Source: Eukaryota sp. TZLM1-RC (Eukaryota; Protista; Metamonada: BaSk clade). Taken from it: DNA of 64,000 nucleotides. How positions within the stretch are numbered: position 1 is the first letter of the stretch; each line of letters begins with the position of its first letter. The translations under genes and the position numbers were made by a program. The notes under the pieces are model-generated. The model had not been told where the DNA came from. It did no database searches and was given only the letters and a program-made list of their open reading frames with translations. Location of the stretch: positions 248,001 to 312,000 of the forward strand of contig JAUPSS010000001.1 of assembly GCA_040285825.1 (NCBI GenBank). The letters are read 5' to 3'. Below are positions 10,573-58,905 of this stretch, in pieces.

Positions 10573-11815
10573 TGATGGATGATTTATCATCTACACAGAC
10601 TCTGAAAATGTCCAATACATTAACCCAAATTACGAAATTCAAACCACCTCAGCAATTTGACTTTTGGTCTAATATACTCCATTTGAACCAACCAATGCTC
10701 AAACAGAAAAGCTATAAATTCAACAACATTATCCACACAGATGGACTTAATATTGCAGTAGAATTTGTTCGTCGGGATTTACAAGGTTAGAAATGTAAGC
10801 CAGACAACAAGGCTGGTATTTCTGATTTATATATTGATGATGTTGATGTTGATACTTTTCAAGACAAACGAATTGTTGTTTGTGATCCTGGAAAACGTGA
10901 TTTATTGTATTTAGGCAGCAGAAAGACTGATGAAGAACTAGCCATGGTGCCTGAACATGAAACTGAACAGCAAAGAAATAGTCGGGTGATGAATCAAGAC
11001 AAGAAGTACAAATGGTTGAGAATGACTCAGATGTCCTGGTCTTTGAAAAGTAGGATGAATGAAAAGCAAAAACGATGGGCGACAAAGTATACTGAGGTAG
11101 GTTACGACAGGAACCAAATGATAGAGTCTAACGAAATGACAATTGAAGATGCAAACACCGAATTATCAGCATTTGCTGCAAATTCAGCAACTTTTATAGA
11201 CTTTTCCAACTTTGTGGTTGCCAAACTTCGGCAAGTTTTTTGACAATCGACTTTTACAGTCTTGACTTGTGGAGCATTCATAAAATGCAAGTTTTCATTC
11301 ACAAGCAAAAGACTGAAAGTTGGTTGTTAAAAAGCCTTGTTCAGAAGTTTGGCAATCCAAAAGACATTTTAATACTAATGGGTGATTAAGGAAAAAAAGG
11401 TTCCAAGAATTTAAAACATCATAGGCCTACTCGAGGCATTGGATGGATTCAATTTCTGAAGAGGAATGGATTTGAAGTGTTGATGATTAATGAAGCTTTC
11501 ACTTCAGCAAAATGTCCTGTTTGTTTTGAAAAGGTTGCTACGTTTTTGAGAGTAACAAATCGCAGATTCTATAGAAGAGAAAAGACTCCTGTTACTACGT
11601 GTCATGGTTTATTAGCTTGTAACAGTGAGAGTTGCAAACTCAGTAACAAAGGCTCAACAAAGCTTTTCAATAGAAATAAGCTGGCTTGTCTGAATATGTT
11701 TGCGATTGCTCAAGCGAGGACGAGTGGTGATGAAAGGCCTCAGTATCTGTCCAGTAGATAGTTTTTGTAATTATTCCACACGAAAATTGATCGTGTATTT
11801 ATGGGAATTTCCCAC
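10573..11815 (+). mobile_element. Fanzor1 (eukaryotic TnpB-like) element, copy A: 5'-truncated pseudogene plus conserved 3' non-coding end
   Basis: Across frames: IHTDGLNIAVEF, RuvC-I IVVCDPGKRDL (10884), FIHKQK, MGD*GK...HHRPTRGIG, RuvC-II INEAFTSAKCPVC, zinc finger CHGLLACNSESC, RuvC-III FNRNKLACLNM, and C-terminal ERPQYLS. It has premature stops (~10788, ~11387) and a frameshift at ~11240. It is colinear with the reverse complement of 42027-43281. Confidence 0.9.
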
Positions 11816-11835
11816 CTCAATCTCTTTATATATCT
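11730..11835 (+). ncRNA. Putative Fanzor omegaRNA (scaffold to 11815, then flank-derived guide), copy A
   Basis: The non-coding tail is conserved with copy B and contains hairpins ACACGA..TCGTGT and TGGGAA-T-TTCCCA. Identity stops sharply after CCCAC at 11815. The RNA itself and its 5' boundary are inferred. Confidence 0.55.
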
Positions 11836-11855
11836 CCAGTATAGAGTCCACAAGA

Positions 11856-14800
11856 ATGAACTTGTCACTTCTGGCATGGTTACTTCTCTCCTCATGTTTT
11901 TTCATGTTTGTGCTCCTTTTTGTTGGTCGGTTTTTCGGCATCTTGACGACCTTCATTCTTTCCTTCTTTCTTCCCAAGACACATCACATCAGAATCCACT
12001 CCCTACGACTAGGCATCCTAGGTGGAATCATCAAGCTTGCTGATGTCACAATCATTACCCGAAGTGCCAAAATACGAATTTCTTCCATTACCCTCACTTT
12101 TCTTTGGTCTGTCAACCACACTACTTCCTCTCCAAGACTCTGCTGCTCCATCAAGGGTCTCCAAGCTCTCTGTTTTGCCAATGCCAGCCGCTATGACATC
12201 CTCCGTGCTATCAATGCTAGACGTACACGTACAAAGGAATCTCGCATTTTTGACATTAGTAAAAACAAGATTGATTTTTCCAAAATTGATCGCGAATTCA
12301 TTCCCGACATTACTTTTGAGGATTTGCTATCTTACTTGGAAATTCCCATTCCCATACTCAATGCCACGTCATCAACCACGTCATCACACGTCATCCCTAC
12401 CTTTTACAAACTAGTTCCAGTTACCTCCATTAAACTACTAAACTGTGGAATTCTTTTGGGTAACAATACACTTCCTTTTACATTGATAACTACTTTCAGT
12501 GGTAGGGGGTTTCATGAATTCAGCCAGGCTCAAAATGAGCTTGACCTGTATAGAACCTCGACAAGATTAAATATTTTTGAACTTTCTGTAAAATTTCGAG
12601 AAAATGATGATTATGTTCCTTTCAATACAAACCAGCCAGCTAAAAACGAAGCTTTTCAAGCAGGAAGTGGTGATTACAGTTTGGAGTTCGATGCAGTTCA
12701 TCAATTCAAAGAGTATTTAACCGCAAGTGGATTTTCTGATTTGATTGATGACGTTTCTGCCGACGTCACCACTCCAGATGACTTTTTTAGACGCCAATCA
12801 GAACTCTGGGAAGAAGTTTCCGATTATGCATCTTGTAAAAACCTTTGTGACTGTGATTCTCTTTCACTTACCTATTATTATGATGTACCAGGTCAAGTGG
12901 CTCATAATTCTGGCGATGAAGGTCAAAATGATGACGTTTGCTACGAGACTCTTGTTGATTCTTCCCCACAATACGGAATTGATGTAAGATTTACATCAAA
13001 ATTAAAAGTTTTTTATGGACCCTATACTGATAGAATCAAAAACTCTTTATTGAGGTATTATTACCCGCTTCAATACGATACTAGGCCATTAGTCAATCCT
13101 TTTGAACCAGACTCGACAAGACTTTACCTATTTATGACCGTTTCAATCAAATTTGATCACCCAGTGTCAATCATTTTACCTTTCCGCCGGATGTTGGATA
13201 ACATTTCTAATCCCACCACCCAAGTTAATTCGCCAGGTTGCATTTCAGTTAACATTTCCCCGGGATCTGGTGTTTCTTTCCTTCAACCCTGGTACGATTT
13301 GGAGGATAAAGGAATGATTTCGTTGCTGGATTGTTCATTAAGGAATGTTTCGGTGACGTGTCATGACGTGGCAGCCGGTTTTGGTTCTTCATTACCATTA
13401 CTAACTGCAAATTCATTAGAAGTTAAAGCAGCAATGTCCTATCCCAGAAGTTGGAATGGAAAGTACAGGTGGTTGTTCTCTATCACGTCATCAAAGGTCA
13501 AAATTAACTATCTTTCTGACCTTTTGGACGTTTGCCAAGACTTTGCTGCTGATTTTGCTTCAGGGGCACCTAAATGGACTATCTCGAACTATTTTCCCAC
13601 CGAATATTCTTTCAAAGTTGCTTTTAAAGATGTTGCAATCAACCTCAACACCACAAAGCACAACATTGTAATCCCACATTGCTCTAATCTATTGTATTCC
13701 CAGGCTGTTCTGAGAGCTACTACGTTGAATCTCAGTGTAAGTTCTCCAATGATCTTATTTAATGCTCCTTTTGTTGAACATTCTTTTAATGTTTTGTTGG
13801 AGGATTGTAGTTTGAGCCTAAAATCACCAAATAATTCTCCTTTAATTTTATTTAAAAAAGAACCAGAAACAGTTTTTGACTTGGATTCTCTTGAAGTGAT
13901 TGGTAGTTATAAAGGCCATTATGCAGTTTTGCCTAACTATGTGGATGAATTCAAACTCAATGTTAGGGTGAATAGAGTTGAGGGTCCTTTCTATGGTTAT
14001 GAATTATTTATTTTTAAAGATTTATTAAGTAATTATTTTGGTTTGGATGCCGCTCCTATTACAATTACTGATTTCCAAAACAATTCCAACACTAACATTA
14101 ACTCAATTAAAAGAATGGATCAGAGAACTAAATGGTTTGATGGCTCTCTCAAACAATTTAATCCATTCAACTCGTTAATCAATGTCGAGGTTTTTGACTG
14201 TGAGTTGCAGTTGCCTTGTAATGTCGTAGAAGACGGTACTGTGCCTGTAGTTATTCAGAAGTTGATCTACACTTCTTCAGGATTAGATGGTCTTGCTGAC
14301 TCAAATGTCTTGATTCCATCAATTTTGATTGGTAACACATCACCAACTTCCCTTCCTCTTCTTTTTTCCGACTTCCAATTAATCCAAAAGGCTTTCTATT
14401 CTCCTTTACCCAATCTTGATTGCTATTACTTTTCTAATGTCATAAAGCTGTCCTCTGTTTCAGGAGAACCTTGCTTGGCCGAGTTTGCCAACATTATTGA
14501 TTGCTTTAGTATTATTTCTAAAACTATTTCTTTACCTCCCTTGAACAGCCCAGTTACGCTTGACCAGCCAGAATTTGATTTAAAATCACCTTTTTCTGTT
14601 TTGGAGTTGTCTATTTCTGATTTTGTTGTTTCTGTTTCCCTTCCCGATTCTGGGTTGTTAAACCTTACTTTGGCAGATGGAATTCATTTGAATTCAGAAT
14701 ATAGTCTCAGAAATTCTAGGGATGGTATTTTGATTTTACAATTACCAGACTTTTCTTTAAAATTATTTGCATCTAAAGAAGAGATAAAAAAGGGAATATT

Positions 14801-22059: not shown

Positions 22060-24430
22060 TTACAATAAGTGAATCATTATCTTGTATTCTTGATTCAGCT
22101 GTGTTTGGTAGGATTGGTAAAAAAGCTGAAGATTTTTCAGTCCTTTTGAATTTAGAATTAAAACAGTTGATGGTGCATCTTCTGCGACACTCTCTTCGGA
22201 TGTTTTTTTTACATCAAGTAATTCGATTTATATTTTCAATTTATATTTCAAAACCACTTTTGATGAAGGGAAGAGGTCATCGAACTTGCCTTTGCTCCAA
22301 AATCATTTGGCGGCAACTGAGTCGTTTTGAATCTGAATTTTGGGTTTTTGGTTGTTATTTAGGCAATTTTGATGAAACTCGAAATCATTTTTCCTCTCTT
22401 TAAGCAAAATAGCTATTGTTCTTTTAGATATGGATTGTTCGGAAAAACATCTTAAATTCTTCATTTCTCACAATTTCCCACAATTGGTTATTTAGGGAAA
22501 TTTACTCATGTCCTACGATCAACCTCGCCATCTATATCTCTCGGCTTTTGCTGAATTTTTATTGAATTAAGAACAAATTTTTTTGGCTAAGTTGCTTGAC
22601 ACTGATTCTACTTTTTTACGTAGTCATATTTTTTGTAGCACAGAATTAGGAGGCATAGATTTTCATAAATCTAAATATTTGTGTAAATCTGCATTTATTG
22701 GTGGAGGAAAAAATTTCGTTTTTGAATTTCTAAAACGTTTTCCTGAAAACCAACATTTAATAGAACACTGTGTGAGTGATTATTTAGTGTCTTTGCAGAA
22801 TCAAATTGAATGCCTTTCTCCTCACATCTGGTCCAAATGCTTTCCTGCCGATATATAAGAAATTCCACCCAGAAGTTTGGTTTCCTTTAGCATACGCCAA
22901 ATTGCAGAAAAACGTATTAAAACTTTTTAAAAACTTGGACTTTATTGTTCGTTCTGGCTTGGCTAAGGAAAAGAATCCCGTTTTTGCCATTTTTTTAATT
23001 GATCTTAAGGAAAATAGCTCAAGTTGACTCATTTCCCAACTTTCCGATGCTTTTGGTCTATTGTTAAATGACCATCAATGAACAACTGCCCTAAGAATGA
23101 GGTGTTTTCTGTGGCCATGCAGTGTGCCAAATGATTTGATTTGTCGTTGTGGTCAGCTTATTAAATTGAATCATCTATTTAATTGCAAATTTCGCTCAGT
23201 TGTTCATGATGCTTTTAGAGACCAACTGTATGCCATGTACAAAAGCCACCATATTGAAGCTTTTGTTGAACCACTTGTGCGTAAATTGTCACCGGAAAAT
23301 GAAGATGATAATACTTTCGGGAAACGGCATGTTGATTTAATTACTCCTGGGTCTGGTGGTGTGATCAATGTTTATGTTGTCACTGTTGATGTTTGTAAAG
23401 AATCAGCAATTGATTTGCTAAAAAAGATGAAACTCCACTTTGCTTTGCTGAAAAGAGCAACATCAAATAGTACAAGGAGTCCTTATCTCAGCTAGGACGT
23501 GTTGAGCATGTAAAATATGAGCTGGTTCCATTTGCGGTTTCTCTTTTTGGTAACATTGGAATACCTGATATTAAATTTCATGAAGGTTTCAGTTTAGAGT
23601 TGCACAAAATACGTCACCACACTTAGGCGACATCGTGGCGACGTTGCCGTGATGTCACTAATTTATCTATCTTTACCTAATCATCTTTTTCCTTTTTTTT
23701 GGGTATTTCAATTCCAATTGATTCAATTCTTTGATTTACATAACAATCATTCCACTTTTTTCATAACATCTATTTCCATTTGATCAGCAAATCAACTCAA
23801 CGTCAATGGGACAAATTAAAAATCATCCCAGCACCCTAATCTTGTATTTTCTTCCCATATCGGTGTCCTAAAACCGGTTGCCCCACTTCCTCCCGGTTGC
23901 AAAAGCCCGAAAGATCCCGAAGTTCTATTAAGTCACGAGTGAGATAATGACTTTTTTTTGTTCACAGCAATATTCGTTTGCTTCGTGAAATGAAAGGTCA
24001 ATCCTTCTGCCTAAAAACATGATAGATGAAGAACAAGAGTTACAATATTGAATTTTTGATGTCTTTATAATTGTTGGTTTCTTTATCTTGATATGTGTTT
24101 CAGTTTGAGTAAAACTTGTTGAGACATAGTTTATTAGCATTATTGAGAAACAATTAAAATGAGTTGACAAAGATGAGGTGACGTGACTTTCCAGGCGACG
24201 TCGTGGTGATGGTGTTGTAGCGTGCAACTCTATTTCAGATGTTTAATAAAGCAAACAGCAGGAAAAGAGCTGAACTTTAATTCCTGGCACACCAGAATTG
24301 TTTTCAGTATTCTTAAAGCAATTCCCGAAATGATAACCAATGCACTGTGATAATTAGGAATACAGTATGAAAATGGCGCACTGAAGAGATGAGATGGTGT
24401 TGATGCGTGTGATAAGGAAATTGAGTTCTA
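22060..24430 (+). mobile_element. Degenerate RLE-type (CRE/R2-group) non-LTR retrotransposon, interrupted by a MITE
   Basis: Fragments GGIDFHKSKYLCK, C.CG...HLFNC, HDAFRDQLY and KRHVDLITP are homologous to 45016-47271 and 50385-51030. Confidence 0.85.
23595..24232. mobile_element. Non-autonomous hAT-type element (MITE), 638 bp
   Basis: Perfect 11-bp TIR TAGAGTTGCAC (23595-23605) / GTGCAACTCTA (24222-24232), 8-bp TSD TTTCAGTT/TTTCAGAT (7/8 match) and subterminal GGCGAC/GTGAC repeats. Removing it restores the retro ORF (EGFRCLIKQ.AGKELNF). Confidence 0.88.
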
Positions 24431-25584
24431 GTTTTTTGTTTAATTGTTTTGTTTGCGTTTCGAAATAAATAAATATATTTAAAATTTTTTCTGAAAAAAG
24501 TGAAAATGGTATTAAATTTTATGATTTATATAAAAAGGTAAGGAATTGTTATACATGAACATTAGTCAAAATCTGCCTTGTTTGAACAATGTGAAACAGC
24601 GAAAAGTTTGGAAAACTATTGAATGATAAACTGTGCTGAGTGACACAGGGATATTCAGTTTATATTCATATCTATTTCAACTTTTCTGGTTTCAAAATCT
24701 TTGAGAAAGAGATTTGGATTGAAAACAATTGGGACAGAAGCAAAATAATACAACCAGAAAAATTGAATAGAACTTTTGTTACTTTTTCAGGAAAACATTG
24801 CATTCAAACATTAATTTGCAAGTTTCTTATATTGAACCATGAACTCCACCGTTTTTTGTTGAAAAGTTATCCACATATTAGAATTATAATTAAAAATTTG
24901 TTATAAGCAGAGCTGTTTATTCTTATATTGACCACAACCCCTCAAATAACATTGACATGAGTTGAATAAAATGGGGATATATCCGAATATGACCACACTA
25001 TGGTTCAGTTCAATGAAGAACAACTCGCCATTAATTTTACTCACAAAATACTGATAAAATATTGAACGCGAAATTTGGAAGCCTTGATAATGCGTACCCA
25101 ATTAGAAAAGTTGCTGCAAGAACTTCGTGACATATTTTCAGTGGCACTACTGTGAAATAATACTTTAATAGGATATTTTTGATACAGACTCCCTAATTTG
25201 ATGGTGGAACAGTGCTAATTTATTAGTGACGGTGATTGGGAATCTCTTGAACCATTTTCTGGCAGTCGCTCAGCAAAATTCTCCTGCTCCTGGATACAGG
25301 TTTCTATTTATGCAAAAATGGGAAAGCAATAAAAACCAACTGTTGGTTCCCATCAGCATTAGCTTCATTGATGTAGACAAATTTAGGTGTGAGTGATAGA
25401 ATATAAATAACTCTTTTTTCAGTAACTGAAGGATCTACCCGTCCTATCAGGCCTAGCTGTAGGCAAGTATTCACACAATAGTGCTCATTTTGAAACTGAA
25501 ATTTGCTTTTAGGAAGGGAATTTCTCCAGCGATCATCCAAAAAACCTCAACATTGTCTAATCTTGATTATATGCTCTTTACACA

Positions 25585-34457: not shown

Positions 34458-35085
34458 TCGGTATCTTCATTACATGATGCTGTTAGAGACACTGTTTTCA
34501 ATATGGCACAAACTGCAAGAATATCGTGTATCAAAGAGCCCCTGCTGAAGGAAACACTGTCTCTGAATAATTTTGGTTCTGATGATAGAGGTGATGTATA
34601 GTGTATTTGGATTGATAATTCTGAAGCTATTGTTGACTTTGTCTCATGTAATGTTGCAAATGATACTTTGGTTCACAGAAGAAAACTTAATCCTGTGGCT
34701 GCTCTGGACTTTAAAGCAAAGGAGAAACATAGAAAATATGATAAAGATATTGAAGAGGCAAATGTCAATAGAAATACACAGCTGGTTTTTATTGCTTTCC
34801 CATTTTCGATAAATGGAAGATCATCAGATGAAGCAGAAACTTTTTTGAATGACTTCCAAAAAATGGTGCAAGAAAAAACAATAAAAAGATTTGATATTTT
34901 TTTATGGCGTTCACGGATTCAATTTTCCATTATTAATAGATTACCACGGTTTTTCAATCGAATAAGAGAAGCTTTAGCTAGACAGCAAGCAGATCAAGAT
35001 TTTGTAGAGGTAATCTTGGTTCAATGATAGTCGTCCCATTAGTTATGATTTAATTTAATCAAGTGTGCAAATTCAATAAATATTA
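34458..35085 (+). mobile_element. 3' fragment of an RLE non-LTR retrotransposon
   Basis: Near-identical to 48300-48925 (DDRGDVY...VDFV, KAKEKHRKY, QQADQDFVE) and ends near AATAAA. Confidence 0.88.
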
Positions 35086-41184: not shown

Positions 41185-42018
41185 TCATAATCTGACGAAA
41201 TGCATTTCTCTTGTTAAATCCCGTCGTAGCTTTTCTCTGGCTAGTGATCGTTTTCTAATATCATAGGCAATTAGACCTAAAGCAAAAATTGTTAAAGCTC
41301 CAAATATAATAACATAAACAGTGGTATTTGGCTCTTCCAATGGAGTAAAAACAAAGTTACGAATAATTACTTCATAATCCTTGTCATCAGTAGGAGCGTT
41401 GCCTTTGTACAGCCAAAGAGCTATCCTCATTCGCTCTTCAGAGGGGGGAAACCTGTACTCACCATCGTATTCCCATGATTGGTATTCTTCTGCGTTTTTG
41501 ATAGATCCCCTGGAGGAGGAAAACTCAATCTTATCACGTGACCACGTGAGTGAATGGATGGTGGGTTTGTTATGGTGGGTGGTGTCGAATTCGTGGTAAT
41601 TGCTACGCAAGTGATTAGGTTGGACTGTGTAGCAAGAGTTATCAAAATCATTCCTTCCCCAGAGACCAAACTCCACAGCAAACTCTTCAACGGGGCCTTG
41701 ATGTATGTAGAAGCTGAGCATAACATTTCGGTCATGTTGAGCAAACACATCATCAACTTCAAATGTGTAAGTGCCATATCCAAAGTGAAGTTTGGAAAAT
41801 ATCTCTGAACAGTACCATTTAGTGCCATTGTTCACAATGCTCAGATGAAGATGGCCATTTTCATCCACATAAGGCATTGAAGCATCGAAAAAATTACTGC
41901 CTGGATACATACGATTGTCTGGAGAATCCAAGATATACCAGTCATAATTGGCAAAGTTGAGAGATTGGCAAAGCACAAATGAAGAGAGCAAAAGTAAGGC
42001 AACTATCAGTTGAAACAT
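41185..42018 (-). CDS. GH16-fold (glucanase-like) type I membrane protein
   Basis: Signal peptide MFQLIVALLLLSSFVLC, then VDENGHLHLSI, W.CSEI, FGYGTY.F, EEFAVEFG.WG and WLYKG.AP, plus a C-terminal TM helix. The likely start is ATG 42018. Confidence 0.75.
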   Translation of the reverse strand: MFQLIVALLLLSSFVLCQSLNFANYDWYILDSPDNRMYPGSNFFDASMPYVDENGHLHLSIVNNGTKWYCSEIFSKLHFGYGTYTFEVDDVFAQHDRNVMLSFYIHQGPVEEFAVEFGLWGRNDFDNSCYTVQPNHLRSNYHEFDTTHHNKPTIHSLTWSRDKIEFSSSRGSIKNAEEYQSWEYDGEYRFPPSEERMRIALWLYKGNAPTDDKDYEVIIRNFVFTPLEEPNTTVYVIIFGALTIFALGLIAYDIRKRSLAREKLRRDLTREMHFVRL

Positions 42019-42125
42019 TATGCTGTGTGGGAAATTCCCAAAAATACACGACAATTTTGGATCAATTTTCGTGTGGAATAATTACAACAACTATCCACTA
42101 CATAGATACTGAGGCCTTTCATTAC
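42007..42125 (-). ncRNA. Putative Fanzor omegaRNA, copy B (scaffold down to 42027, guide from 42026)
   Basis: The minus strand carries hairpins ACACGAAAATT-GATCCAA-AATTGTCGTGT and TGGGAATTTCCCA, conserved with copy A, and diverges after CCCAC. Confidence 0.55.
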
Positions 42126-44150
42126 CACTCATCCTCGCTTCAGCAATTGCAACCATATTCAGACAAGCCAGCTTATTTCTATTGAAGTGCTTTGTTGAGC
42201 CTTTGTTACTGAGTTTGCAACTTTGACTGTTACAAACTAATAAACCATGACATGTAGTAACAGGAGTCTTTTCTCTTCTATAGAATCTGGGATTTGCTAC
42301 TCTCAAAAACGTAGCAACTTTTCAAAACAAACACGATATTTTGCTGAAGTGAAAGCTTCATTAATCATCATCACTTCAAATCCATTCCTTCTCAGAAATT
42401 GAATCCATCCAATACCACGTGTAGGTCGATGATGTTTCAAATTCTTGGAACCTTTTTTACCATAATCACCCATTAGAATTAAAGTGTCTTTTGAATTGCC
42501 AAACTGCTGAACAAGGTTTTTTAACAACCAACTTTCAGTCTTTTGCTTGTGAATGAAAACTTGCATTTTATGGATGCTCCACAAGTCAAGACTGTAAAAG
42601 TCGATTGTCAAAAAAAACTTGCCGAAGTTTGGCAACCACAAAGTTGGAAAAGTCTATAAAAGTTGCTGAATTTGCAGCAAACGCGGATAATTCGGTGTTT
42701 GCATCTTCAATTGTCATTTCGTTAGACTCGATCATTTGGTTCCTGTCGTAACCTACCTCAGTATACTTTGTCGCCCGTCGTTTTTGCTTTTCATTCATCC
42801 TACTTTTCAAAGACCAGGACATCTGAGTCATTCTCAACCATTTGAATTTCTTGTCTTGATTCATCACCCGACTATTTCTTTGCTGTTCAGTTTCATGTTC
42901 AGGCACCATGGCTAGTTCTTCATCAGTCTTTTTACTCCCAAAATACAATAAATCACGTTTTCCAGGATCACAAACAACAATTCGTTTGTCTTGAAAATCA
43001 TCAACATCAACATCATCAATATATAAATCAGAAATACTAGCCTTGTTGTCTGGCTTACATTTCTGACCTTGTAAATCCCGACGAACAAATTCTACTGCAA
43101 TATTGAATCCATCTGTGTGGATAATGTTGTTGAATTTAGAGCTCTGATGTTTGAACATTGGTTGATTTAAATCGAGAATATTAGACCAAAAGTCAAAATG
43201 CTGAGGTGGTTTGAATTTCGTAATTTGGGCTAGTGTATTGACCATTTTCAGTATCTGTGTAGATGATGAATCATCCATCATTGTTTGTTTAACAATTCTC
43301 CATAGTGTTCTTGTATCAATGGGAAAATATCCAGGGCCCTCAGTGGTTGAAACAGGAGAAATATGATAAGGTTTTTTCTCTCTACTGGAGATATGCTGGG
43401 CAATTGTAATTGCTGGTTTTAGGAATATTTGAGAATCTTTTTCAACAGCGTCTGCAAGAAAATGTATATCCACTGGAAATATGTTGTCAACTAAATTCTC
43501 GTCAGTGACCAAATTCTCAATTTGGCAAGTAAATGGCTCAATAAGATTTTCAAATATGTCTCTAAGTTCATTATTTCTTATATCATGTTGTTCACATAAA
43601 TCGAAAAATGCATCATTCACAAGGTCTGAAATATTTTCAGGATGATGAAACCAAGGACTCAGGCAATCTCTATCATCAACTAAAAACAAGTTTTTGAATT
43701 GACGAAGCCTAAATCTATCTAGTGAAATAATTGTAGATAATGGCGTTGAGTATCCACCCAGCTTATGCATTTCTGCTAACACATTTTCCACATCTACTTT
43801 GTCAAAGTAAACATTAATAAATCGATTAATATGTTTTTCATAATTTAGTTTCAAATTATTCTCAAAATTGGCAACTATTACTGGGGCCATATACTCAGGT
43901 GGTCTACTGAAGCCATCAGTTGGAAATTGTGGAAAAGACTCAGGCCTATATCTCAAATGGTCTACATAACTCAATGATTTGTTCAACTTTTGTTGTTCAA
44001 AGGTGGTCGATAAGCTATAATCTCCTTCACCATAAACAAAGTTTTCAAAATCCTGTGGAAATGCACTTTTTGGTTTCAGCATTTCTTGCCCATAATATTC
44101 AGCTGAAATATACCAAATTCTGGCCATTAATGATTCATATAATTGGGCTA
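42027..44150 (-). mobile_element. Fanzor1 element, copy B: near full-length ORF (~680 aa, two 1-bp frameshifts) plus conserved 3' end
   Basis: ANFENNLKLNYEKHINRFIN, YHISPV...PGYFPIDTRTL, IHTDGFNIAVEF, RuvC-I IVVCDPGKRDL, FIHKQK, MGDYG...PTRGIG, INEAFTS, CHGLLVCNSQSC, FNRNKLACLNM and ERPQYLC. The 5' end abuts a retrotransposon at ~44150. Confidence 0.92.
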
Positions 44151-44997
44151 ACTAAAAATACTTCATCCTTATGAAGACCCTATAATGGATCAAAATTTTG
44201 ATGGCACATACTGGGAAAATTATCCATTGATGCCATCAGAAGTTTTTTCGGTGATCAAAAAGAGACCACGCGGTAAGTCTGCCGGACTTTCTGGTATTAC
44301 TATTGATCATGTAATAGCCGCAATTATTTCTTCAGAGGATTGTCTTGGTTTATTAACCAAATTTTTCAACAAAATATTGTCTGGTCAACTCAAATACCCA
44401 GAAGAATTAAGAAATTCTCGTTTGACTGCACTTGTCAAAAATTCAAAATTGGATGTTCGTCCTATTGCAGTCTCTGAGAGCTTACAAAATATTTTTTCTG
44501 CTTGTTGCTTAAGCAGGTTCAATGAGAAAGCAAAAAAAATTTATTACCCTTTCAATATGGTACCCTTTCAATACCACAGATGGAGTCTCTTCAGCGATAT
44601 TTGCTACTGATGTTTTATTTCGCCAAAATGAATCCAATGTTTGTATGTCATTGGATTTTAGTAATGCTTTCAATTCACTAAGTCCTCGCAGTATCCATGG
44701 TGCTCTATTGCAATATATGCCGGAATTAATACCATATTTTCAATCAACATATTGCACATATTCTAATTTACATTTTGGTAATAACATTTTGAGTTCATCA
44801 AGTGGTGTAAAGCAAGGAGATCCGTTAGGGTCTTTTTTGTTTTGTTTGGCCATTCATCCTATTTTACTGCAAATTCAAGAGATGTTTCCTTCACTAAAAA
44901 TGATTGCATATATGGATGATGTTGTGCTTATTGGTGATTTAAATATTGTGAAACAATCAACTGTATGTTTTAAAGAATTATTTACCAAAATTGGTCT
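44150..44997 (+). mobile_element. Non-LTR retrotransposon reverse transcriptase fragment (CRE/R2 group)
   Basis: LHP, KSAGLSG, VRPIAVSE, LDFSNAFNS, GVKQGDPLG, AYMDD and KIGL, with one frameshift. Confidence 0.9.
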
Positions 44998-47312
44998 AAA
45001 GCTCCTGGGCCATCTTTGTTGAATTTTGACATGATGAAATCAGCTGTTGGACAGTGTCCTGAAATTGCCGATGATCTTGTTCTTTTTTTCAACAATCTTC
45101 TTACGTTAAAAATTAAAGTCCCTTTTGAGATGACCAGTGCTCGCTTAATTGCCCTCAAAAAAAGTCAATCCAAAATCCGTCCAATTGCAATTGGAGAATC
45201 GTTTTCAAGAATTCTTGCGTCTCTTGTTTCCAATGAATTGGGAAAAAAGCCAAGGAATTTTTCAGTCCATTTCAATTTGGAATGAAGACAATTGATGGTG
45301 CTTCTTCTGCTGCTCTTTCGTCGGATCTGTTTTTTAATTCTAGTGATTCTAACTACATCTTCAATTTAGATTTTAAGAATGCTTTCAATTCTGTATCTCG
45401 TTATTCCATTTTACCTTTGCTGCGAAAGCATTTTCCTCAAGTTGAGCCTTTTTTCTATTCATTTTATGGAAAATCATCCACATTGGTCTATGAAAACTTT
45501 GACCTGCTTTCATCTTCTGGTGTTAAACAAGGTGATCCACTTGGTCTTTTTTTCTTTTGTCTGGCAATTCATCCATTAATGTGCGAATTAAAAGAAAAAT
45601 TCCCAGAAATAGATATTGTAGCATATATGGATGACATTTCTGTAATTGCTCCTATCACAATTCTGAAACAAATAGCAACTTTTATTCAACAGCGTTATGA
45701 AGATATTGGTCTCTCATTGAATATCTCCAAATATTTGATTATTGGCCATGAACCAATTGATTTTTTCATTAATGATGTCAATGTCCCCTTTATCAATTAT
45801 GATCAGTCTGGTTTTGGTTTTTTGGGTTGTTATCTCGGAAATATTGATGAAGTCAATGCCAACTTTCGACTCTGTTGACTCAATTTGGAAATGAATTAGA
45901 ATCAATAGAAAATTTAAATATTGAGAAACATTTAAAATTCTTTTTCCTAAAAATCTGTTATTCTGGAAAATTTACTCATATTTTGAGATCAACATCACCA
46001 TCAAATTCTTTGGAGTTTTGTCGCATTTTTAATGAACAAAGAACCAATTTTTAGCAAAATTATTGGAAATTGATGCATCTCAGTTACGAAGCCACATTTT
46101 TAGTCGTACAAATTTTGGTGGTGTTGATTTTCATAAATCAAGCTACCTTTGTAAAGCTGCCTTTATTGGAGGTGGAAAGAATTTTATTTATGAATTTGTG
46201 AATCGTTTTCCTGAAAAAATTCATTTCATTGAAAATTGTGGCAGCTCTTATCTTATTTCTTTGCAACAGGAAATTGAAACTCTTTCACCCAATATTTGGG
46301 CTAAATGTTTCCCCTCTGATATTGTGGAACTTCCTTCAAGAAGCTTGCTCTCCTTACCACTGACTTTTGCCAAATTGCAGAAAAAAATCTTGAAAGTTTT
46401 AGAAAACTTGGATTATATTGTACGTCTTAGCTTGGCTAAGGAAAAAAATCCCGTTTTTGCAAACTTTTTGATTGATCTTGAAGACAGTTGCTCAAGTTGC
46501 CTAATCTCCCAAATTCCCAACATTTATGGCCTTCTACTTAATGATCACCAATGGACCACTGCAATGAGAATGAGATGTTTTCTATGGTCTTGTTCATTAC
46601 CAAATGAATTAATTTGTCGCTGCTAGAGTGTTGTTACGCTTTTCCATATTTTAAACTGTAAGTATTTTATAACTTATCGCTCAATTGTTCATGACTCAGT
46701 TCGTGATCAATTGTATGCCATGTGCAAAAGTTTCAATATAGAGGCATTTATTGAGCCACTAGTACGTAAGCTGTCTTCAGATCAAACGGATGATTCCTTT
46801 GGTAAACGAAGGGCAGATTTAGTAGCTCCAGGGATCGATGGTGTTCTCAATGTTGTAGATGTTGTCTCAGTTGATGTTTGCTAAAATTCTGCTGCTCGTT
46901 TAGTGTATTCCGCTGATTCGCCGTTATCTAACGCCGAAAAAAAGAAGATAAAAAATTATGAAGAACCTTTGGCACAGTTAGGTAGAGTGGAACATGTGAA
47001 ATATCAGTTTGTGCCGTTTGCAATTTCTCTTTTTGGCAATATTGGACCTTCAGGGTTGCACTTTTTTGAAAATTTTAAATAAGTGTTACTGAATAGGTCT
47101 GGTAAAACAATGAACTCCACTTTCTGGATAAATAGAATTGCTTTTTGCATTTTCAAGTCTATTCTAACAATGATTTCAAAGGCACTTTTAGCTATTGGTG
47201 TAGAATATGAACGTAATGCTGTGAGTAGGTTCAGTAATAGTGACGCTTGTTTGGAGGATATTGAATTCTAGATGGGTTTTTGTATCTCAATAAATATTCC
47301 AGTTTTAGAAAA
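44998..47312 (+). mobile_element. 5'-truncated RLE non-LTR retrotransposon (RT, zinc knuckle, restriction-like endonuclease), degenerate
   Basis: IRPIAIGE, LDFKNAFN, QGDPLG, YMDD, GGVDF, C.C...H.LNC, HDSVRDQ, KRRADL...VVDV and K.K.Y, ending with AATAAA and an A-run. Confidence 0.9.
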
Positions 47313-48925
47313 AAAATTGGTCTCCGACTTATATTAAATGTGTTTTGTTATCGAATTCTCCAGTTTCCACAATGGTTGATGGTATTGAAATTCAAGCCAA
47401 ATTATATTCAATTGATGCTATTCGTCATTTGGGTTCGTTTTTAGGAAATAATGATGAAATTACCAAAAAATTGTTTGAAAAGTTGAACTCAATTTCTGAC
47501 AAAATTGACCGAAAGATGAATTTAGATATAAAAAACACATCAAATTTACCATTATAAGACTGTGTTTTAGTTCCAATTTTAATATTTCGATCTTCAAATC
47601 ATCTCGTCACTATACCTTTGGCTCAGAAGTTTAATGAGTTACATGCAAAAGTTCTGTCTCAATTACTGGGATGTAAAATGTTTCAAATTCCAGATTATGC
47701 TTACCTTAGTCCACATTATGGCGGTTTAGGGTGGACGAAGGCTTCTATTCTTACCTCGTGTTCTTTTGTTGGTGGATGCAGAAATGCAATCTTTGAGTTT
47801 TCCGAAAGATTTGCAGATTGGGAAGATTTATTGATGACAACGCAAAGTTCCACTGTTTTTGCATTAAATGAAGAAATTTCAAAAATTGATGCAGAAAAAT
47901 GGGGTCGATGTTTTCCCCAATCATTCAATGGCAATATTCCAGAAAAGAATGTTTTAAATTTGAAGTACACTCTTCGAACATTACAGAAACGATTGACTGG
48001 AATGTATGAAAAAGATCTTTATAATAATGTATGCAGCTCGGCTGTTTTAAATCAAGATCTTCACTCATTGTTATTGGAAAAGGGTGTTTGCGAAAACAAG
48101 TCATCAGATTCTACACTTTTTGTAACCATTGTACCACGAAGAATATGATTGTGTGCCACTAATGAAGCATTTGTAACAAAAATGAGATTATATTTGAATA
48201 TCCCCATTAATCAATTATTGTCAAAAGAAAAATGTATTTGTTCGAATTCACCTCAACTCACTTTGCGCCATGCTCTGAATTGCTCTAAATTGATAACTTA
48301 TCGTTCTTCATTACATGATGCTGTTGGAGACACTGTTTTCAATATGGCACAAACTGCAAAGATATCGTGTATCAAAGAGCCCCTGCTGAAGGAAACACTT
48401 TCTCTGAATAATTTTGGTTCTGATGATAGAGGTGATGTATACTGTGATTGGATTGATAATTCTGAAGTTATTGTTGACTTTGTCTCATGTAATGTTGCAA
48501 ATGATACTTTGGTTCACAGAAGAAAACTTAATCCTGTGGCTGCTCTGGATTTTAAAGCAAAAGAGAAACATAGAAAATATAATAAAGATATTGAAGAGGC
48601 TAATGTCGATAGAAATACACAGCTGGTTTTTATTGCATTCCCATTTTCGATAAATGGAAGAATATCAGTTGAAGCAGAAACCTTTTCGGATGAGTTCCAA
48701 AAAATGGTGCAAGAAAAAACAATGAAAAGATTTGATATATTTTTATGGCGTTCACGGATTCAATTTGCCATTATTAACAGATTACCACGGTTTTTCAATC
48801 GAATAAGAGAAGCTTTGGCTAGACAGCAAGCAGATCAAGATTTTGTAGAGGAAATCTTGGTTCAATGATAGTCGTCCCATTAGTATTGAGTTAAATTAAT
48901 TAAGTGTGCAAATTCAATAAATACC
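47313..48925 (+). mobile_element. 3' half of an RLE non-LTR retrotransposon (possibly the continuation of 44150-44997)
   Basis: RHLGSFLG, YGGLGW, CIC...HALNC, HDAVGD, RGDVY, KEKHRKY and a terminal AATAAA. Confidence 0.88.
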
Positions 48926-50049
48926 AAGATAATTGGGCAGATATTCGTGGTAATATAAAATTACGTTCATAACAAGACTGTAAATACAGCTTTAAGCAAC
49001 AAGTGGTGTGAATACGTAGCTGTTGAAATTTTACAGCAGTTTCTCTCAATTTGAATATCACATTTGAATGTTTAACCATTGAGTTAACGGTTGCTCGAAT
49101 GGTTTTATCAGATCATAAAATTAATTTGTCTTTTCTGAAACAGCACGAAAAATTTCAGAAAAAGGATACAATCATGAAGCCCGTATTGAATCGAATTTTG
49201 TATCAGAGGAGAAGTAGCTTAACAATCAATTGGCAAAATATGAGAAAACTCCTGATGAAGATCGATTTTCGTTTCATTTATCATTTTATATGCCAGATTG
49301 CCTAATCCATGTCCGTATTGTATTTTAATAAATTTTCTGGCAAATACCAAAGTATCTAAAAGAAAAATGCCATTTTCCTTGATGAAAACTTCTCTCCATC
49401 TTGGTGAAAGTTTATTGAGTACATCAATTGCTCTATCATCTGGACAGTGGGAAATGGTAAATCAAAATAATATAATCTATTTTTTAAAACCTGTAAATCA
49501 AACTGCATTAAATTGTGATTAAGAAAACAATGGGGTTGATGATTACCAATAATGTTTAGGAACCTACGAAGCAAGGTTTTTTCCTCAGTGAATATTTCTG
49601 TCTGAACATCCATATCAATGTCTGGTTATCTGATTTGAGGACTCATTCTCAATATAAGGGAATATTTACTCTCCAAGTATAAATTATGGCGATCAAACTT
49701 ACCAGCAACAATCGAAATTAAAAACACTTTTTGATCTGAAATCCACTCACCTTTTTGCTCATCAGTTTTCTTTTTCAAAAGATTTGCACCCTCCTTTCTC
49801 TTTTTGTTGATAATCTCGTCAGGAGGGAGAAATTGGCCATCATGATTTTGATAAAGATGACCATCCTGTTAGGTTTCAAGATCAAAGCACATAACAATGG
49901 GGAGATTTTGATTTGAGGTCATTGATTTGCATTGAATCAATGGATCATGCTTGAAGCCACTACGACTTGGCTCAATTTTTCTAACCATACTCAGTTCCAA
50001 TGGTTTTTATGTCAAAATAATCAAACTTAACATTATCAGAATAACAATT

Positions 50050-50320
50050 TAAGACACAACATCCCATATCTAAAGTGCCAGAATCTAAACCACAAAAATG
50101 AACAAACTCATCAACATCAAAACATCAATGCAAAACAAAACATAAACAAAAGAAACATCCCACGTCTACAGTCCAAGTACGTCAATTACAAAAAGCAACA
50201 AACTGAAAAACATCAAGACAACAATTCAAAACAAAACACAAACAAGAAAAACATCCCATATTCAAAGTGCAAGTACCTAAACCAAAAACATCAACAAAAT
50301 CAAAAACATCAATAGAACAT
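50050..50320 (-). repeat. Degenerate tandem repeats (AACATCCCATAT..AAAGTGC units), related to 10450-10570
   Basis: Three to four imperfect units, A/C-rich on the + strand. Confidence 0.6.
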
Positions 50321-50384
50321 TCCACATTTTTTTTAAGAAATTTTGAAATTTATTTTCAACGTTGACAAAACATTAAACAAAAAA

Positions 50385-51030
50385 CTAGAACTCAATATCC
50401 TCAATACACGCATCAACATCATCAAATCTTTTCAGCGCGCGATTTTCATACTCTATTCCCAATTGTAACAGTGCTTTGGTCAACATTTCTGGAATTGCTT
50501 TAAGAATACTAAACACAATTCTATTATGCCAGAAATTGAAGTTCAATTCTTTTCCTGCTCTTTCTTTTATTAAACTTCTGAATCCTTCAAGAAATTTAAT
50601 GCCAGATATTCCAATGTTACCAAAAAGAGAAACAGCAAATGGAACCAACTGATACTTGACATGCTCAACACGTCCTAGCTGAGATAAGGGTTCATTGTAC
50701 TTTTTGATTTTGCTCTTTTCAGCAAAGCAAAGTGGAGTTTCATCTCTTATAGCAAAATCAATTGCTGAGTCTTTACAAACATCAACAGTGACAACATCAA
50801 CAACTTTAATAACACCATCAGACGCAGGGGTAATTAAATCAGCACGGCGTTTCCCAAAAGTATTTTCATCTTCATTTTCAGATGACAACCTTCGCACAAG
50901 TGGTTCAACAAAAGCTTCAATGTGATGACTTTTTCACATAGCGTATAGTTGGTCTCTAACAGCATCGTGAACAACTGAGCGATATGTAATATTAAATTTG
51001 CAATTAAATAAATGATTCAGATTAATAACC
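50385..51030 (-). mobile_element. RLE non-LTR retrotransposon 3' fragment with an intact endonuclease segment
   Basis: HLFNCK, HDAVRDQLYAM, KRRADLITP...VVDVVTVD, AEKSKIKKY and VPFAVSLFG. Confidence 0.88.
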
Positions 51031-51460
51031 ACATCCAAGGGGATTAGCACCATGTCTGATTCAACAGCACCCATATCATGACTCACATGATGACTGAAAA
51101 AAGTGCAATGCTCTACCCCCACGGAAGGATCAGAACGACTATTCCAATAGGAAATCGAGGCTCTGACCATCCGTTTATTCCTGTAGATCAGGATGACTGT
51201 TCCCGACTGAAGAGTTCGGGAAGAAGTACTCTGTTGTTCTTTGAAGAACAGGTTGAAGGAGGAGGTGGGAATTGAGTCCGTAACCTCGTTATCCTTTTTC
51301 TCCTTTTGGTGCATGATGTCAGAAGAATGGAAAGAGTCAAGATAATCTCGATGTCTGACATGCTGATTGCAATTTCAAATTGATTGCAAATTTCCACAAT
51401 GGTATCAAATGCCTATCCACTGTATCTCTATTAGTGGTCATCAACATCAGCTCGATTTAC
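51030..51460 (-). repeat. Dispersed repeat fragment (second copy of 10164-10455)
   Basis: The ORF translations MEICNQFEIAISMSDI and VEHCTFFSHHVSHDMGAVESDMVLI are shared with 10225-10575. Confidence 0.8.
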
Positions 51461-51688
51461 CCTCTAGCTGTTCTGGTCGTTGTTACTCCGTCTAAACTCT
51501 ATGTTCTTTTCCAGTTTCCTTCTCCTTCACTTACCTCTTGTTCTCTTCCCGTTCAGCTATTTCAACAATTCTCCCTTCCTCTATCCCTCTCTGTTTCGAT
51601 GGGACCCAAACAAATGCTTGTATGACCCCAGAATCAACAAAATTAATAATTGAGTAGATGGTCTATTGATTTCAGACGTCTCAAATTC

Positions 51689-55699: not shown

Positions 55700-58600
55700 A
55701 AAGGTCATGTGTATGAGAAGCTTCAGCGAATTTCTACATCATGGCCGTTTGCTTTCTTGTTCACGTCAAGAAATGGTCATACTCATGCGCTACCCACTAG
55801 TAGGCCTCTCCAACAACTAGTGGATGCAAAGTGCCGCCAGCAGCAAGGCAACTACCAAGAGTTGCTAGCTGATGGTCGTGTGCCCTGGAAGCTCAACTTC
55901 TTTCGCTCGTATGCAGTCGATCATAACTGCTCTGGAGCAGCCACTTATGCTGGCTCTATGCTTGACAACGGCACGAACTCTCGGAAACCTCTTCCTTCTT
56001 TGTTCAACACACATCATACATTGGCTGTCGTTCTATTTAATTTTTTGGTTAATGATCTCAAATTTAGAACACTCTTCTTTTTTCCCGAACAGTGACCCTT
56101 AATCAAGGGAACAATATCTACATCTTTCGCTGCGGCTTAACAATCCAAAACCACCTGGAGCAAGCCTTTCCACATCCCTTTAGACGACATAGACTCACTC
56201 CCATCGCTAGTTTGAAGCCTGCTTTTGTCCCCTTTTCCACATGGGTTCTCAACCATTTTATCTCCAAAAACACATCACAAACAATTTTGAAAAACCCTTA
56301 TTTATTGTTTAAAACAAAAGCTAATGACTACACCATGTCTTCTAATGGTGATAGTGTCCGTATAACTTTCAAACCGCACCCCAAAGCAACACGAGTGAGA
56401 TTGTCCGGAGAAGCCTTGACTGACAAGAGATCCAGAGGGGAACTTGACTACTACGAAACAGCAATGTGTATTATCGATATCTTTTATTTATCTTATCGTG
56501 GGACACTTCCGATAAATATATTGTTAACAAAATATCGTATCTTATTTATCGACATATCGAGCCTCAAGACGATAAATATATCGTTGATAATCAAGTGGAT
56601 AAGTCACAATTTTGTGCTTAAAAACAGTAGTGTTTATTCCTTAAGCTTAAAATTCCATATTATCATCACTTAAACCTTCATCGTCTTCGCTATCAACTCC
56701 AACATCCTCCAATTCTTTCCCCGACATTAAACGGCGAACTGTTTCATAATCCCAGAACTGCCTGTTATACAATAGGAAAAGTTGCTTTTCAAGAGATGCA
56801 GGGGTCATGTTTGGTCGTGTCGTACCATATGTCCTTTTAGCAGCACTAAAAAGCCTTTCGACTTCACAACTTGTTGCAGGAATCCAGTCAAGATCGATAT
56901 ACTTGGATTCTTTGTTCTTTTTCGCTTGCTGGCGCATTTCCATTCTTTTATCAAAGTCTAGGTCACCGTTGTCGATATCAGCGATCTGGTCCTTTTCAAA
57001 ACACTCTATTGCCTTTCTTTCTCTTTCATTGAGTGACTGTTCGTCTTTGTTTTGTACCTTCACTATGGCTGCCTCAAAGTCTGGGTGTGCTGCATTGTTT
57101 GTCGGGTATTTAGTCCAGACAGTCAAGTGAGGGAAATCGTTGTGAAATACCTCAAAAGCATCATTAGCAAGAGCAAGAGTCAGTTTTGTGCCTTGAAGAT
57201 AGTTAGTGATCCTTTTGTTTTTAGTCAAATGATCATAAAGTTGACGCAGGGCCCGTTCTTGTGATGCGTTTGGGAGAAGGTCATCAAAAGAACTGCCAAA
57301 AAGCTGAAAAATTCCTGCTTCTTTATACTGGAAGAATCTTTTCAACGTATCAGCTGCAGACAACCATCTAGTTACATTTCTTTTGGTTGGTCTTCGGGTT
57401 GTTTTAGTCCTTAAAACCATTGACCTTTTTACCCGTCGCAACATTGTAAATATTTTGTCAATAGCTTTCAGTTCATTAACGAGGCTAGATTGAAGCGTCT
57501 TCAGCTCCAAGGCCAATCTGTGAGAGGCACATCCAATGGTAGGAACCCCTAAAAGTTCACCCAGTTTTGCATTTGTAGGACAGTTATCGCTTACAACAAA
57601 GAACAAATTTTGTCGGGTCTTGTTGTAAGCGGCAAGAATGCCGTCAATAATATCACAATACTCTTCAGCACCCAGAAGGGTCGTGGCATCGTCAAAAGGT
57701 TGTTGGTCAGTCACTTCAAGTTCAGTTTCAAAGGGAGTAAGTGCAAGAAGGATAGGTTTTTCGAGACCTAGACCAACAGCAAAGATTCCTACATATTCAT
57801 CACTCTGAGAACGTTCAAACCAACCATCTACGATGATACCAATTTTCGGCGGTAAAGTCCGGGACACTTCTTCTACTACCTTAGTGTACAGTAGCTTGAA
57901 GTACTTCATAAGAGTTGAACGGCACACTGGTTTAAAGTTGAGATAAGTCGACAAGATTTTGTCTTCAACAAAGGTAAAAGGTCTTTGTCCAGAGATGAGT
58001 AAGTCTAAAGTTGCGAAGACCCTATTAATGCGAAGACCCGAGTGGTTTCATAGTACGAAACCACTCGGAATAGAAAACACTTGTGAGCCAAGGTTGAACG
58101 GCCAAGACCTCGCCAGAAACCAAAAGCTACTGAGTGGCAGGCATCTGATGACCAAACGGAAATGTTGTTCTGGGCCATCGACCCCAACCATCCAAATCTA
58201 TGTGGTTCCAGCATTGGAACATGTTCAGAGCCGACCGTATCCAATATCTTCTTGGCACCAAAGCAACGAAAATCAATCACTCCGCTTCACTGACCCACTC
58301 ATCAATAGATGTTTTTGACGTGCAGAAATTGAACCATTATCTGCTTGAAATATCAACTATCGGTGACTATAAGGACTATGAAGGTAATAACGTAAGACGA
58401 TCATTGCTAAAACAGCAATTATATCTGAGTGCTCGAAAAGCATTGAGGAGAAACACATTTGACTTTTTTATAAGAAAACAGAAAAGATAACAGCTCCATT
58501 AGCAACAAAGTGAAAAAATTTGCAAACGGTCGAGAAGTAAAGGTGTGGTTTGGCAATGGAGGTGGTGGTACATCACGTCAAAAAGTGAAAACTCCACGTA

Positions 58601-58905
58601 AGGCGTTTCTAAACTTGTTATAATGTTCATTTGCTAATGTGAAGATCGGAGATGAATATATGACATCTGCAGAGGTGAACTGCTGCAAGATGCTACACCA
58701 AGAAATCTATCGAGAAATTGATGGTGAAATTAAAGTTCACAACGCCTATTTCAGTTGTCCAGAATGTAATCAAGTTTGGTCTAGAGACATTTCAGCATCA
58801 CTAAATCAGCTAGAAATTTCAATTAGTGAGCATTACTATAAAACAAGACCAGAAGCGTTCCAGAGACCACAAAGAAACTGGGTTCAAAGCTACGTATTGT
58901 TCTAG
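55700..58905 (+). pseudogene. Second-family Fanzor1 pseudogene (copy C), split by a hAT transposon (N-part ~55700-56458, C-part ~58410-58905)
   Basis: N-part: HRLTPIASLKPAFVPFST..L and SNGDSVRITF. C-part: FDFFIRKQK, VWFGNGGGG...TP, IGDEYMTS...CC, FSCPEC.QVWSRDISASLN and RPEAFQR. RuvC-I was not found; stops and frameshifts are present. Confidence 0.78.
56459..58409 (-). mobile_element. hAT-superfamily DNA transposon (transposase ORF 56647-57954, 5' part disrupted)
   Basis: RPFTFVED, IIVDGW, VSDN..TN, IGCASHRLAL, NVTRWLS and WIPATSCEVERLFSAAK. Ends are CAGCAATG (56459) and CATTGCTA (58402-58409). Subterminal TATCG/CGATA repeats are present. Confidence 0.88.

Follow-up and report, generated by a model that had tools for sequence, protein, structure and literature searches.

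Decayed exonuclease-Fanzor1 elements of Skoliomonas litria share a right end and a two-stem tail that is a candidate omegaRNA scaffold

The window analyzed here, 64,000 nucleotides (nt) of contig JAUPSS010000001.1 (positions 248,001 to 312,000) from Skoliomonas litria TZLM1-RC (Eukaryota sp. TZLM1-RC), contains two copies of an element encoding a Fanzor1, a eukaryotic relative of the RNA-guided nuclease TnpB. Copy A lies on the plus strand and copy B on the minus strand. The element family is mobile, about 4.1 kb long and specific to Skoliomonas, and both window copies are dead members of it. They end at the same point, a short distance before a host gene in each case, and the non-coding tail that precedes this end folds into two stems. 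By analogy with the Fanzor1 complexes whose structures have been solved, we propose that the tail of active relatives would serve as the scaffold of an omegaRNA and that the flanking DNA would supply its guide. Taken as a whole, we consider this reading of the two copies to be probable. To our knowledge, Fanzors are the only RNA-guided DNA nucleases of eukaryotes, and very few of them have a defined RNA.

Identity of the protein and its catalytic center

A sequence-only reading of the window had taken copy B for a Fanzor, and we compared the encoded protein with known nucleases by sequence and by structure. The Fanzor1 moiety of B (REC, WED, RuvC and TNB) lies together with its 3' tail at 42027-44148 on the minus strand, where the open reading frame (ORF) is broken into pieces at 42586-44127, 42303-42641 and 42091-42306. 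Pfam scans of the window pieces gave nothing significant, the only match being PF07282 with an E value of 0.09. A PDB sequence search with the 513-amino acid (aa) piece of B by itself returned only GtFz1 of Guillardia theta (E 0.099), and a family profile was needed to link this N-terminal piece to Fanzor1. The profile, built from the 513-aa piece and its relatives, matched SpuFz1 of Spizellomyces punctatus with an E value of 8.9e-14 and GtFz1 with 8.1e-9, colinear up to DPGKRD. For the C-terminal part, an unbroken piece of 175 aa from another locus of the same genome (L003) matched PpFz1 of Parasitella parasitica (E 4.9e-22), SpuFz1 (7.2e-17) and GtFz1 (0.012). This alignment covers the GD..G loop, the RuvC-II motif E-x-x-TS-x-x-CPxC, the CHGLL.C zinc ligands and the NR(D/N)..A..N helix of RuvC-III.

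The fold was examined with AlphaFold2. The model of the 513-aa piece of B, for which eight sequences were used, was too poor for use, with a predicted local distance difference test score (pLDDT) of 52.6. The intact relative P0040 (KAL0220259.1; 603 aa), which is 33% identical to the N-terminal part of B and 47% identical to the L003 piece, served as a proxy and yielded a model with a pLDDT of 84.8. The top Foldseek matches of this model were PpFz1, SpuFz1 and GtFz1 (E 1e-22 to 8e-13, template modeling score about 0.6), with values of 1e-22 to 1e-20 for the first two. Cas12f, CasPhi and TnpB were ranked lower, and the match to ISDra2 TnpB is distant (TnpB chains at an E value of about 0.02). 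The searches proposed in the sequence-only reading returned Fanzor1, and the bilobed fold modeled for P0040 is of the TnpB/RuvC type. Since the L003 piece, the family profile and the P0040 model all match Fanzor1, we regard the identity as settled: the family is Fanzor1 by sequence and, for the intact relative, by predicted fold.

PpFz1 (PDB 9CF0-9CF3) and SpuFz1 (PDB 8GKH) are the nearest known proteins by both sequence and fold. They share with the family the RuvC-I motif DPxxRD, the RuvC-II motif and the C-terminal NR(D/N)..A..N helix. They differ from it in that the identity is 18-21% over the whole fold match, that the Skoliomonas family has Asn in place of the RuvC-III Asp, that in its intact members the Fanzor follows a PolB-type exonuclease within one longer ORF, that its coding region holds a conserved long hairpin, and that the window copies are dead.

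The catalytic residues of B were assigned to Asp in VVCDPGKRD (RuvC-I, codon 42967-42969), Glu in INEAFTS (RuvC-II, 42357-42359) and Asn in FNRNKLACLNM (RuvC-III, 42175-42177), all on the minus strand; the last motif aligns with the NRD of PpFz1 and SpuFz1. All copies, as well as the relatives from all three species, have NRN and not NRD. When the 150 best representatives were surveyed, 109 could be scored at the RuvC-III position, with 92 having Asp and 14 having Asn. GtFz1 (PDB 9CER) has the same Asp-Glu-Asn triad and is active: with its natural Asn at the third catalytic position it cleaves DNA, an N658D change lowers its activity, and SpuFz1 with D606N outperforms the wild type (PMC11423790). 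Since GtFz1 cleaves DNA with a natural Asn, Asn at RuvC-III does not mark a dead site, and the possibility that NRN denotes a nuclease-dead Fanzor was ruled out. By analogy with GtFz1, activity would be expected in the intact copies. The family represents a second natural clade with the Asp-Glu-Asn triad that boosted SpuFz1 activity when engineered. GtFz1 stands further from the Skoliomonas family, with far weaker E values in the sequence comparisons (0.012 and 8e-9), and its omegaRNA has 150 nt and four stem-loops (PMC11423790). The cysteines of the zinc finger (TNB), CPVC ... CHGLLACNS.SC, are aligned to those of PpFz1 in A and in the copies at L001-L005, and the first of them is Tyr in B. 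In Pfam, the PF07282 signal stays below threshold, at 19 bits where 26.3 are required.

The relatives were used to define the family and its range. The 513-aa ORF of B has 24 close paralogues at 73-90% identity, all from TZLM1-RC and all annotated as hypothetical proteins, and its more distant relatives (34-39% identity) are confined to the sister strains TZLM3-RCL and GEM-RC1. An exhaustive HMMER search returned 970 relatives, and all 12 of the best that were checked are from Skoliomonas. Loci for comparison were reached through annotated paralogues on other contigs of the same genome (L001-L005), or were taken from GEM-RC1 (L006), from TZLM3-RCL (L007, L008, and L009 and L011, which belong to one family) and from a second family of TZLM1-RC (L010). 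No description of the Skoliomonas family was found in the Fanzor literature searched, and the Skoliomonas genome paper makes no mention of TnpB (PMC11316075). The suggestion that this protist Fanzor1 family may be undescribed agrees with these searches, and the exonuclease-Fanzor family as such appears to be undescribed in the searchable literature.

Architecture and decay of the two copies

The ORF of the intact relatives extends well beyond Fanzor, which occupies its C-terminal part and is preceded by a PolB-type 3'-5' exonuclease. An example is P0037 (KAL0221781.1; 1281 aa), in which a lysine-rich N-terminal region is followed by the PolB exonuclease (PF03104, E 2e-13) and then by Fanzor. 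An additional Ulp1-type peptidase signal is present in P0185, and P0182 has helicase domains too, probably from a merged gene model. The family offers a natural exonuclease-Fanzor fusion. Copy B had been described as near full-length. Given the longer, exonuclease-fused ORF of the intact relatives, with Fanzor at its C-terminal end, this description does not hold: the stretch concerned is only the Fanzor half of an element of about 4.1 kb, and the exonuclease part lies beyond a nested retroelement. The latter encodes a reverse transcriptase, is 4780 bp (about 4.8 kb) long and splits B at 44149-48928 on the plus strand. It is flanked by a target duplication, the 10-bp direct repeat GCCCAATTAT at 44139-44148 and 48929-48938, and the uninterrupted copy at L001 is continuous across the junction. 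The terminal 120 bp or so of this retroelement also occur at 34959-35082 of the window and in L003.

The decayed exonuclease part of B was located at 48929-49892 on the minus strand by tblastn with P0017, P0002, P0007 and P0025; the corresponding domain of intact relatives is PF03104. The 5' part of B (49893-51618, minus strand) comprises a leader ORF, a tandem array (50013-50319) with a repeat unit of about 96 bp, and another nested insertion, the second in B (about 50320-51028). We provisionally set the left end at 51618, a position supported by two copies only (B and L004), and without its insertions the element has a length of about 4.1 kb. The tandem repeats, which lie between leader and exonuclease, are also present at 10461-10574 on the plus strand and at L004 4241-4689, and their copy number varies. 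The second insertion (50320-51028, minus strand) is 80-86% identical to window segments 23158-23592 and 24234-24527 on the plus strand. A T-rich run followed by GGG..CCCA occurs in direct orientation at the provisional left end (51595-51618, minus strand) and at the right end (42027-42045, minus strand), reading TTTGGGTCCCA and TTTGGGAATTTCCCA. Upstream of the exonuclease-Fanzor ORFs of relatives we noted 2A-like D(V)E.NPGP (DVE.NPGP) motifs, at L006 4452, L007 4890 and L009 369; no intact 2A-like motif was found in the copies of this window.

Smaller lesions were found within the Fanzor part of B. A T8 run at 42610-42617 (minus strand) shifts the reading frame, where L002 and L004 have an in-frame T7 and copy A has T6 (11236-11241). 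The difference in this run may be a true mutation or a homopolymer error of long reads (assembly method in PMC11316075); the other lesions are not attributable to long-read errors. They lie at 42318-42338 on the minus strand, where a 1-bp deletion next to 42318 makes a second frameshift and codon 42336-42338 changes the first zinc-finger Cys to Tyr. The segment that reads AKCPVCFEKV in A and the other copies is AKYRVCFEK in B, followed by the frameshift. We propose that B was once a complete element and was later disabled by the nested retroelement, the second insertion, two frameshifts and the Cys-to-Tyr change.

Copy A consists of two blocks. Its 3' block (10573-11815, plus strand; 1243 bp) runs from late WED to the end of Fanzor and through the tail, with two in-frame stops and the T6 frameshift. 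Homology in A had been thought to start at 10573; this start was set too late, as a 5' block at 10150-10574 (plus strand) also matches the 5' leader region of B (51472-51029) together with repeat units. Copy A looks like a non-autonomous derivative that arose by internal deletion, in which the leader block at the 5' end and the final 1.24 kb were kept and the protease, exonuclease and REC portion is gone. With its internal deletion, two stops and one frameshift, A is inert. Neither window copy retains an intact ORF, and both are pseudogenes. As inert relics, the two are useful as markers of the ends of the family.

The common right end and its non-coding tail

Copies A and B align with 93% mean identity over A 10573-11815, a span that takes in RuvC-I, RuvC-II, the zinc finger, RuvC-III and the stop codon. 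This is the alignment, extending beyond the stop, that the sequence-only reading had described, and the sequence quoted there was found at its position. The similarity ends directly after ...GGGAATTTCCCAC (CCCAC). When B was compared by blastn with five loci of the same genome, the copies stopped at query positions 2121-2126, the CCCAC end being at 2124. One copy among the matches is truncated earlier than the shared end, and at L003 the match stops at 2091, yet the tail extends to GGGGAATTTCCCCA. Since five further copies, from other contigs, stop within a few bases of this point, the boundary between A and B is no accident of having only two copies to compare. The common right end of all copies is ...GGGAATTTCCCA(C), and the second copy had been correctly taken to mark it. 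The prediction that further copies would share a CCCAC terminus was borne out for the position of the end, as the right ends of seven copies coincide within a few bases, and not for its last base, which varies (CCCAC in three of the seven, CCCA then T in two, degraded in two). A covariance model of the tail, run over 195 kb, had hits at the seven tails (E 5e-15 to 5e-10) and nowhere else. Across L001-L005 and the window copies the 3' end is constant and the 5' starts are at widely differing positions, the shortest copy being the final 343 bp only (L002 4023-4367). This pattern resembles 5' truncation, though the element lacks poly(A) and does not itself code for a reverse transcriptase.

From the stop codon to the right end, the tail measures 54 nt, or 64 nt in B, where it occupies 42027-42090 on the minus strand after the stop TAG at 42091-42093. 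In the minimum free energy (MFE) fold, a first stem-loop (SL1) of 6 bp (ACACGA/UCGUGU, 7-nt loop) is followed by a U-rich linker of six bases, a second stem-loop (SL2) of 4 bp (GGGA/UCCC) and two bases before the flank. In B, SL1 is at 42046-42074, the linker at 42040-42045, SL2 at 42029-42039 and the end at 42027; in A, SL1 is at 11778-11796 and SL2 at 11803-11813 on the plus strand. Compared with shuffled sequences, the tail hairpins have z scores of -1.9 (A) and -2.1 (B). The SL1 loop of B is enlarged by a local duplication of 10 bp. This difference had been read as a loop deletion in A; because the other copies (A, L001, L002, L003 and L005) all carry the short loop, it is an insertion in B. 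In the lineages of L007, L008, L009/L011 and L010, the MFE folds have, right after the stop, a 5-7-bp hairpin that a U-rich linker joins to a second one, with unrelated stem sequences. The L009/L011 tail can be aligned base by base to that of the window family, with a C-G pair of SL1 changed to G-C. With MAFFT, the tails of different lineages could not be aligned in register.

This tail is laid out like the published omegaRNAs of PpFz1 and SpuFz1. SL1 has 7 bp in all three solved Fz1 complexes, and SpuFz1 and PpFz1 have one further stem before the guide, which is 4 bp in PpFz1 (PMC11423790). The whole omegaRNAs measure 90 nt in SpuFz1 and 75 nt in PpFz1 (PMC11423790, PMC10432273), and the SpuFz1 scaffold has been described as two stems plus a linker (PMC10432273). 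The order in these RNAs is SL1, linker, short SL2 and guide, and the Skoliomonas tail is laid out alike, which agrees with the compact scaffold proposed earlier. By this analogy, the tail in active relatives is most likely an omegaRNA scaffold. The transcript would extend past the tail, with roughly the first 15-20 bases of the flank forming the guide as in PpFz1 and SpuFz1. Since the tail layout equals that of a minimal PpFz1/SpuFz1 omegaRNA, we find the guide reading of the flank plausible. In B the putative guide would be 42007-42026 (minus strand), which includes the host start codon at 42016-42018. A scaffold at the right end with a guide from the flank would also resemble ISDra2 TnpB of IS200/IS605, where empty-site cutting maintains the element. 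ISDra2 differs in being bacterial, in having a TnpA partner, in the DNA hairpins known at both of its ends, and in a scaffold that overlaps the ORF, whereas the Skoliomonas candidate fits wholly in the non-coding tail. With this minimal tail wholly clear of the ORF and numerous copies fixing where it ends, the scaffold/guide junction is directly testable with an intact relative.

Several observations weigh against this proposal. Only short local hairpins stand out, as a 194-nt fold around the tail has a z score of 0.0 against shuffles, and SL1 has 6 bp here compared with 7 bp in the solved Fz1 RNAs. The family covariance model did not detect the tails of other lineages, so the likeness across lineages depends on how we interpret the folds; for three lineages, the end position was chosen after the hairpin had been seen. 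At the left flanks no target-adjacent motif (TAM) or other shared motif was visible in the two copies that reach the left end. No terminal inverted repeats were found between the left and right ends, unlike the Spu-1 elements, which have inverted repeats (PMC10432273). Pfam scans of the long intact ORFs P0037, P0183, P0185 and P0194 found PolB exonuclease, Ulp1-type peptidase and TNB signals only, with no transposase domain and neither a TnpA (Y1/HUH) nor a serine recombinase partner.

Some of these features raise the possibility that the tail hairpins work mainly at the DNA level, as a structure by which a mobilizing machinery recognizes the right end. The subterminal hairpins of IS200/IS605 elements are recognition structures for TnpA. 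Like those of single-strand transposons, the ends of the Skoliomonas element are asymmetric and without detected terminal inverted repeats. The SL2 sequence is nearly palindromic, a similar TTTGGG..CCCA motif lies near the provisional left end, and a constant 3' end is combined with variable 5' ends. However, the family's long intact ORFs yielded no transposase domain, whether HUH/Y1, serine, DDE or of another type, and the number and size of the stems fit the solved Fz1 omegaRNAs. We consider a mainly DNA-level role unlikely, and it could coexist with a role as RNA.

The positions of the right ends were examined as well, in a window of high gene density and 33-40% guanine plus cytosine. Copy B ends 8 nt before the ATG (42016-42018) of a co-oriented host gene of 277 aa with a signal-peptide-like N-terminus. 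The flank of A (11816-11858, plus strand) consists of 40 nt and then an ATG (11856-11858), with which a Csf1/BLTP1-like gene in the same orientation starts. Six of the ten right ends examined are located 0-40 nt upstream of a co-oriented host ATG (B 8, A 40, L001 26, L003 about 12, L005 0 and L009 0), for which random placement would have a probability of roughly 1e-10. The sequences at L009 4850-4870 and L011 about 4350-4370, both from TZLM3-RCL, are identical through ...CTTCCATGTCC; because the identity extends this far, the L009 ATG at 4864, annotated as the start of a HAD-hydrolase, is inside the terminal sequence of the element. This siting bears on how such elements choose their sites or survive at them. 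It would also be accounted for if the tail had been kept as a co-opted promoter or 5' leader of the downstream host gene, with the shared end reflecting selection on host expression. However, the same tail and end are present where no co-oriented gene follows (twice in L002, in L011 and in L008), and the two-stem layout is preserved in lineages of three species beside intact Fanzor ORFs. Co-option could explain the survival of copies at such sites, not the structure, and we regard it as quite improbable.

A long hairpin within the coding region

A further hairpin was found inside the ORF. Rfam returned only sub-threshold matches resembling miRNA precursors, and these prompted us to fold the region concerned, 42485-42645 on the minus strand, between RuvC-I and RuvC-II. 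It forms a long, near-perfect hairpin (-60.8 kcal/mol, z = -7.0) that encloses the T-run. The homologous stretch folds as a long hairpin in A (about 11208-11366, plus strand), L002 (7869-8030), L003 and L004. Long hairpins with different sequences are present in L006 of GEM-RC1 (7259-7420; -61.8 kcal/mol), in L007 (6753-6914), L008 (7328-7489) and L009 (4282-4443) of TZLM3-RCL, and in L010 (4470-4631) of the second TZLM1-RC family. The homologous region of one Fanzor1 gene from outside Skoliomonas, with the canonical NRD, showed no such fold (z = +1.8).

Conservation of the hairpin was examined by RNAalifold in a near-ungapped alignment of eight sequences from six lineages. Over the 32 predicted pairs, 89.8% of cells can pair, compared with 39-50% when the partner is slid by 1-3 columns, and compensatory double changes were seen in 15 pairs, compared with 3-8 in the slid controls. 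Not one of 500 shuffles attained any of the conservation measures. In every lineage, G-U cells outnumber A-C cells, which points to a structure of the sense RNA strand. No counterpart was found in the Fanzor and TnpB literature searched. This hairpin of about 100-150 nt within the ORF is the new feature here; six Fanzor lineages, from three Skoliomonas species, conserve it through compensatory changes.

The position of the T-run within this structure raises the possibility that B is a working gene, in which programmed ribosomal frameshifting at the run is driven by the surrounding hairpin. The frame does change at a U8 run in a very stable hairpin, and A and B both deviate from T7 at the same run. 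However, the copies with T7 are in frame, the annotated intact relatives have one continuous ORF, and other lineages keep the hairpin without the U-run; a programmed frameshift at this site was therefore rejected. B is further damaged by its second frameshift, the loss of a zinc ligand and the 4.8-kb insertion. We therefore hold B to be a pseudogene and consider a working gene most improbable.

As to the role of the hairpin, we can only speculate that it is a signal for mRNA processing or autoregulation, perhaps tied to the production of omegaRNA. ISDra2 TnpB cuts its own mRNA and trims it to omegaRNA (PMC10278001). A more far-reaching proposal is that the family would represent a distinct, working OMEGA/Fanzor variant, in which the hairpin is a processing or regulatory signal (for example an RNase III-type cut that frees a 3' fragment as the two-stem omegaRNA) and the right ends either target the 0-40 nt before host ATGs or simply survive there, so that the guides are leaders of host genes. 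We put this forward tentatively, as unlikely.

The window also contains a remnant of a different TnpB/Fanzor-like gene at 55709-58905 on the plus strand, which the sequence-only reading had taken for a second family split by a hAT element. It has a C-terminal piece with CPEC and SRDISASLNQ, the latter with the canonical Asp, and it is interrupted by a 435-aa ORF on the minus strand (56647-57954).

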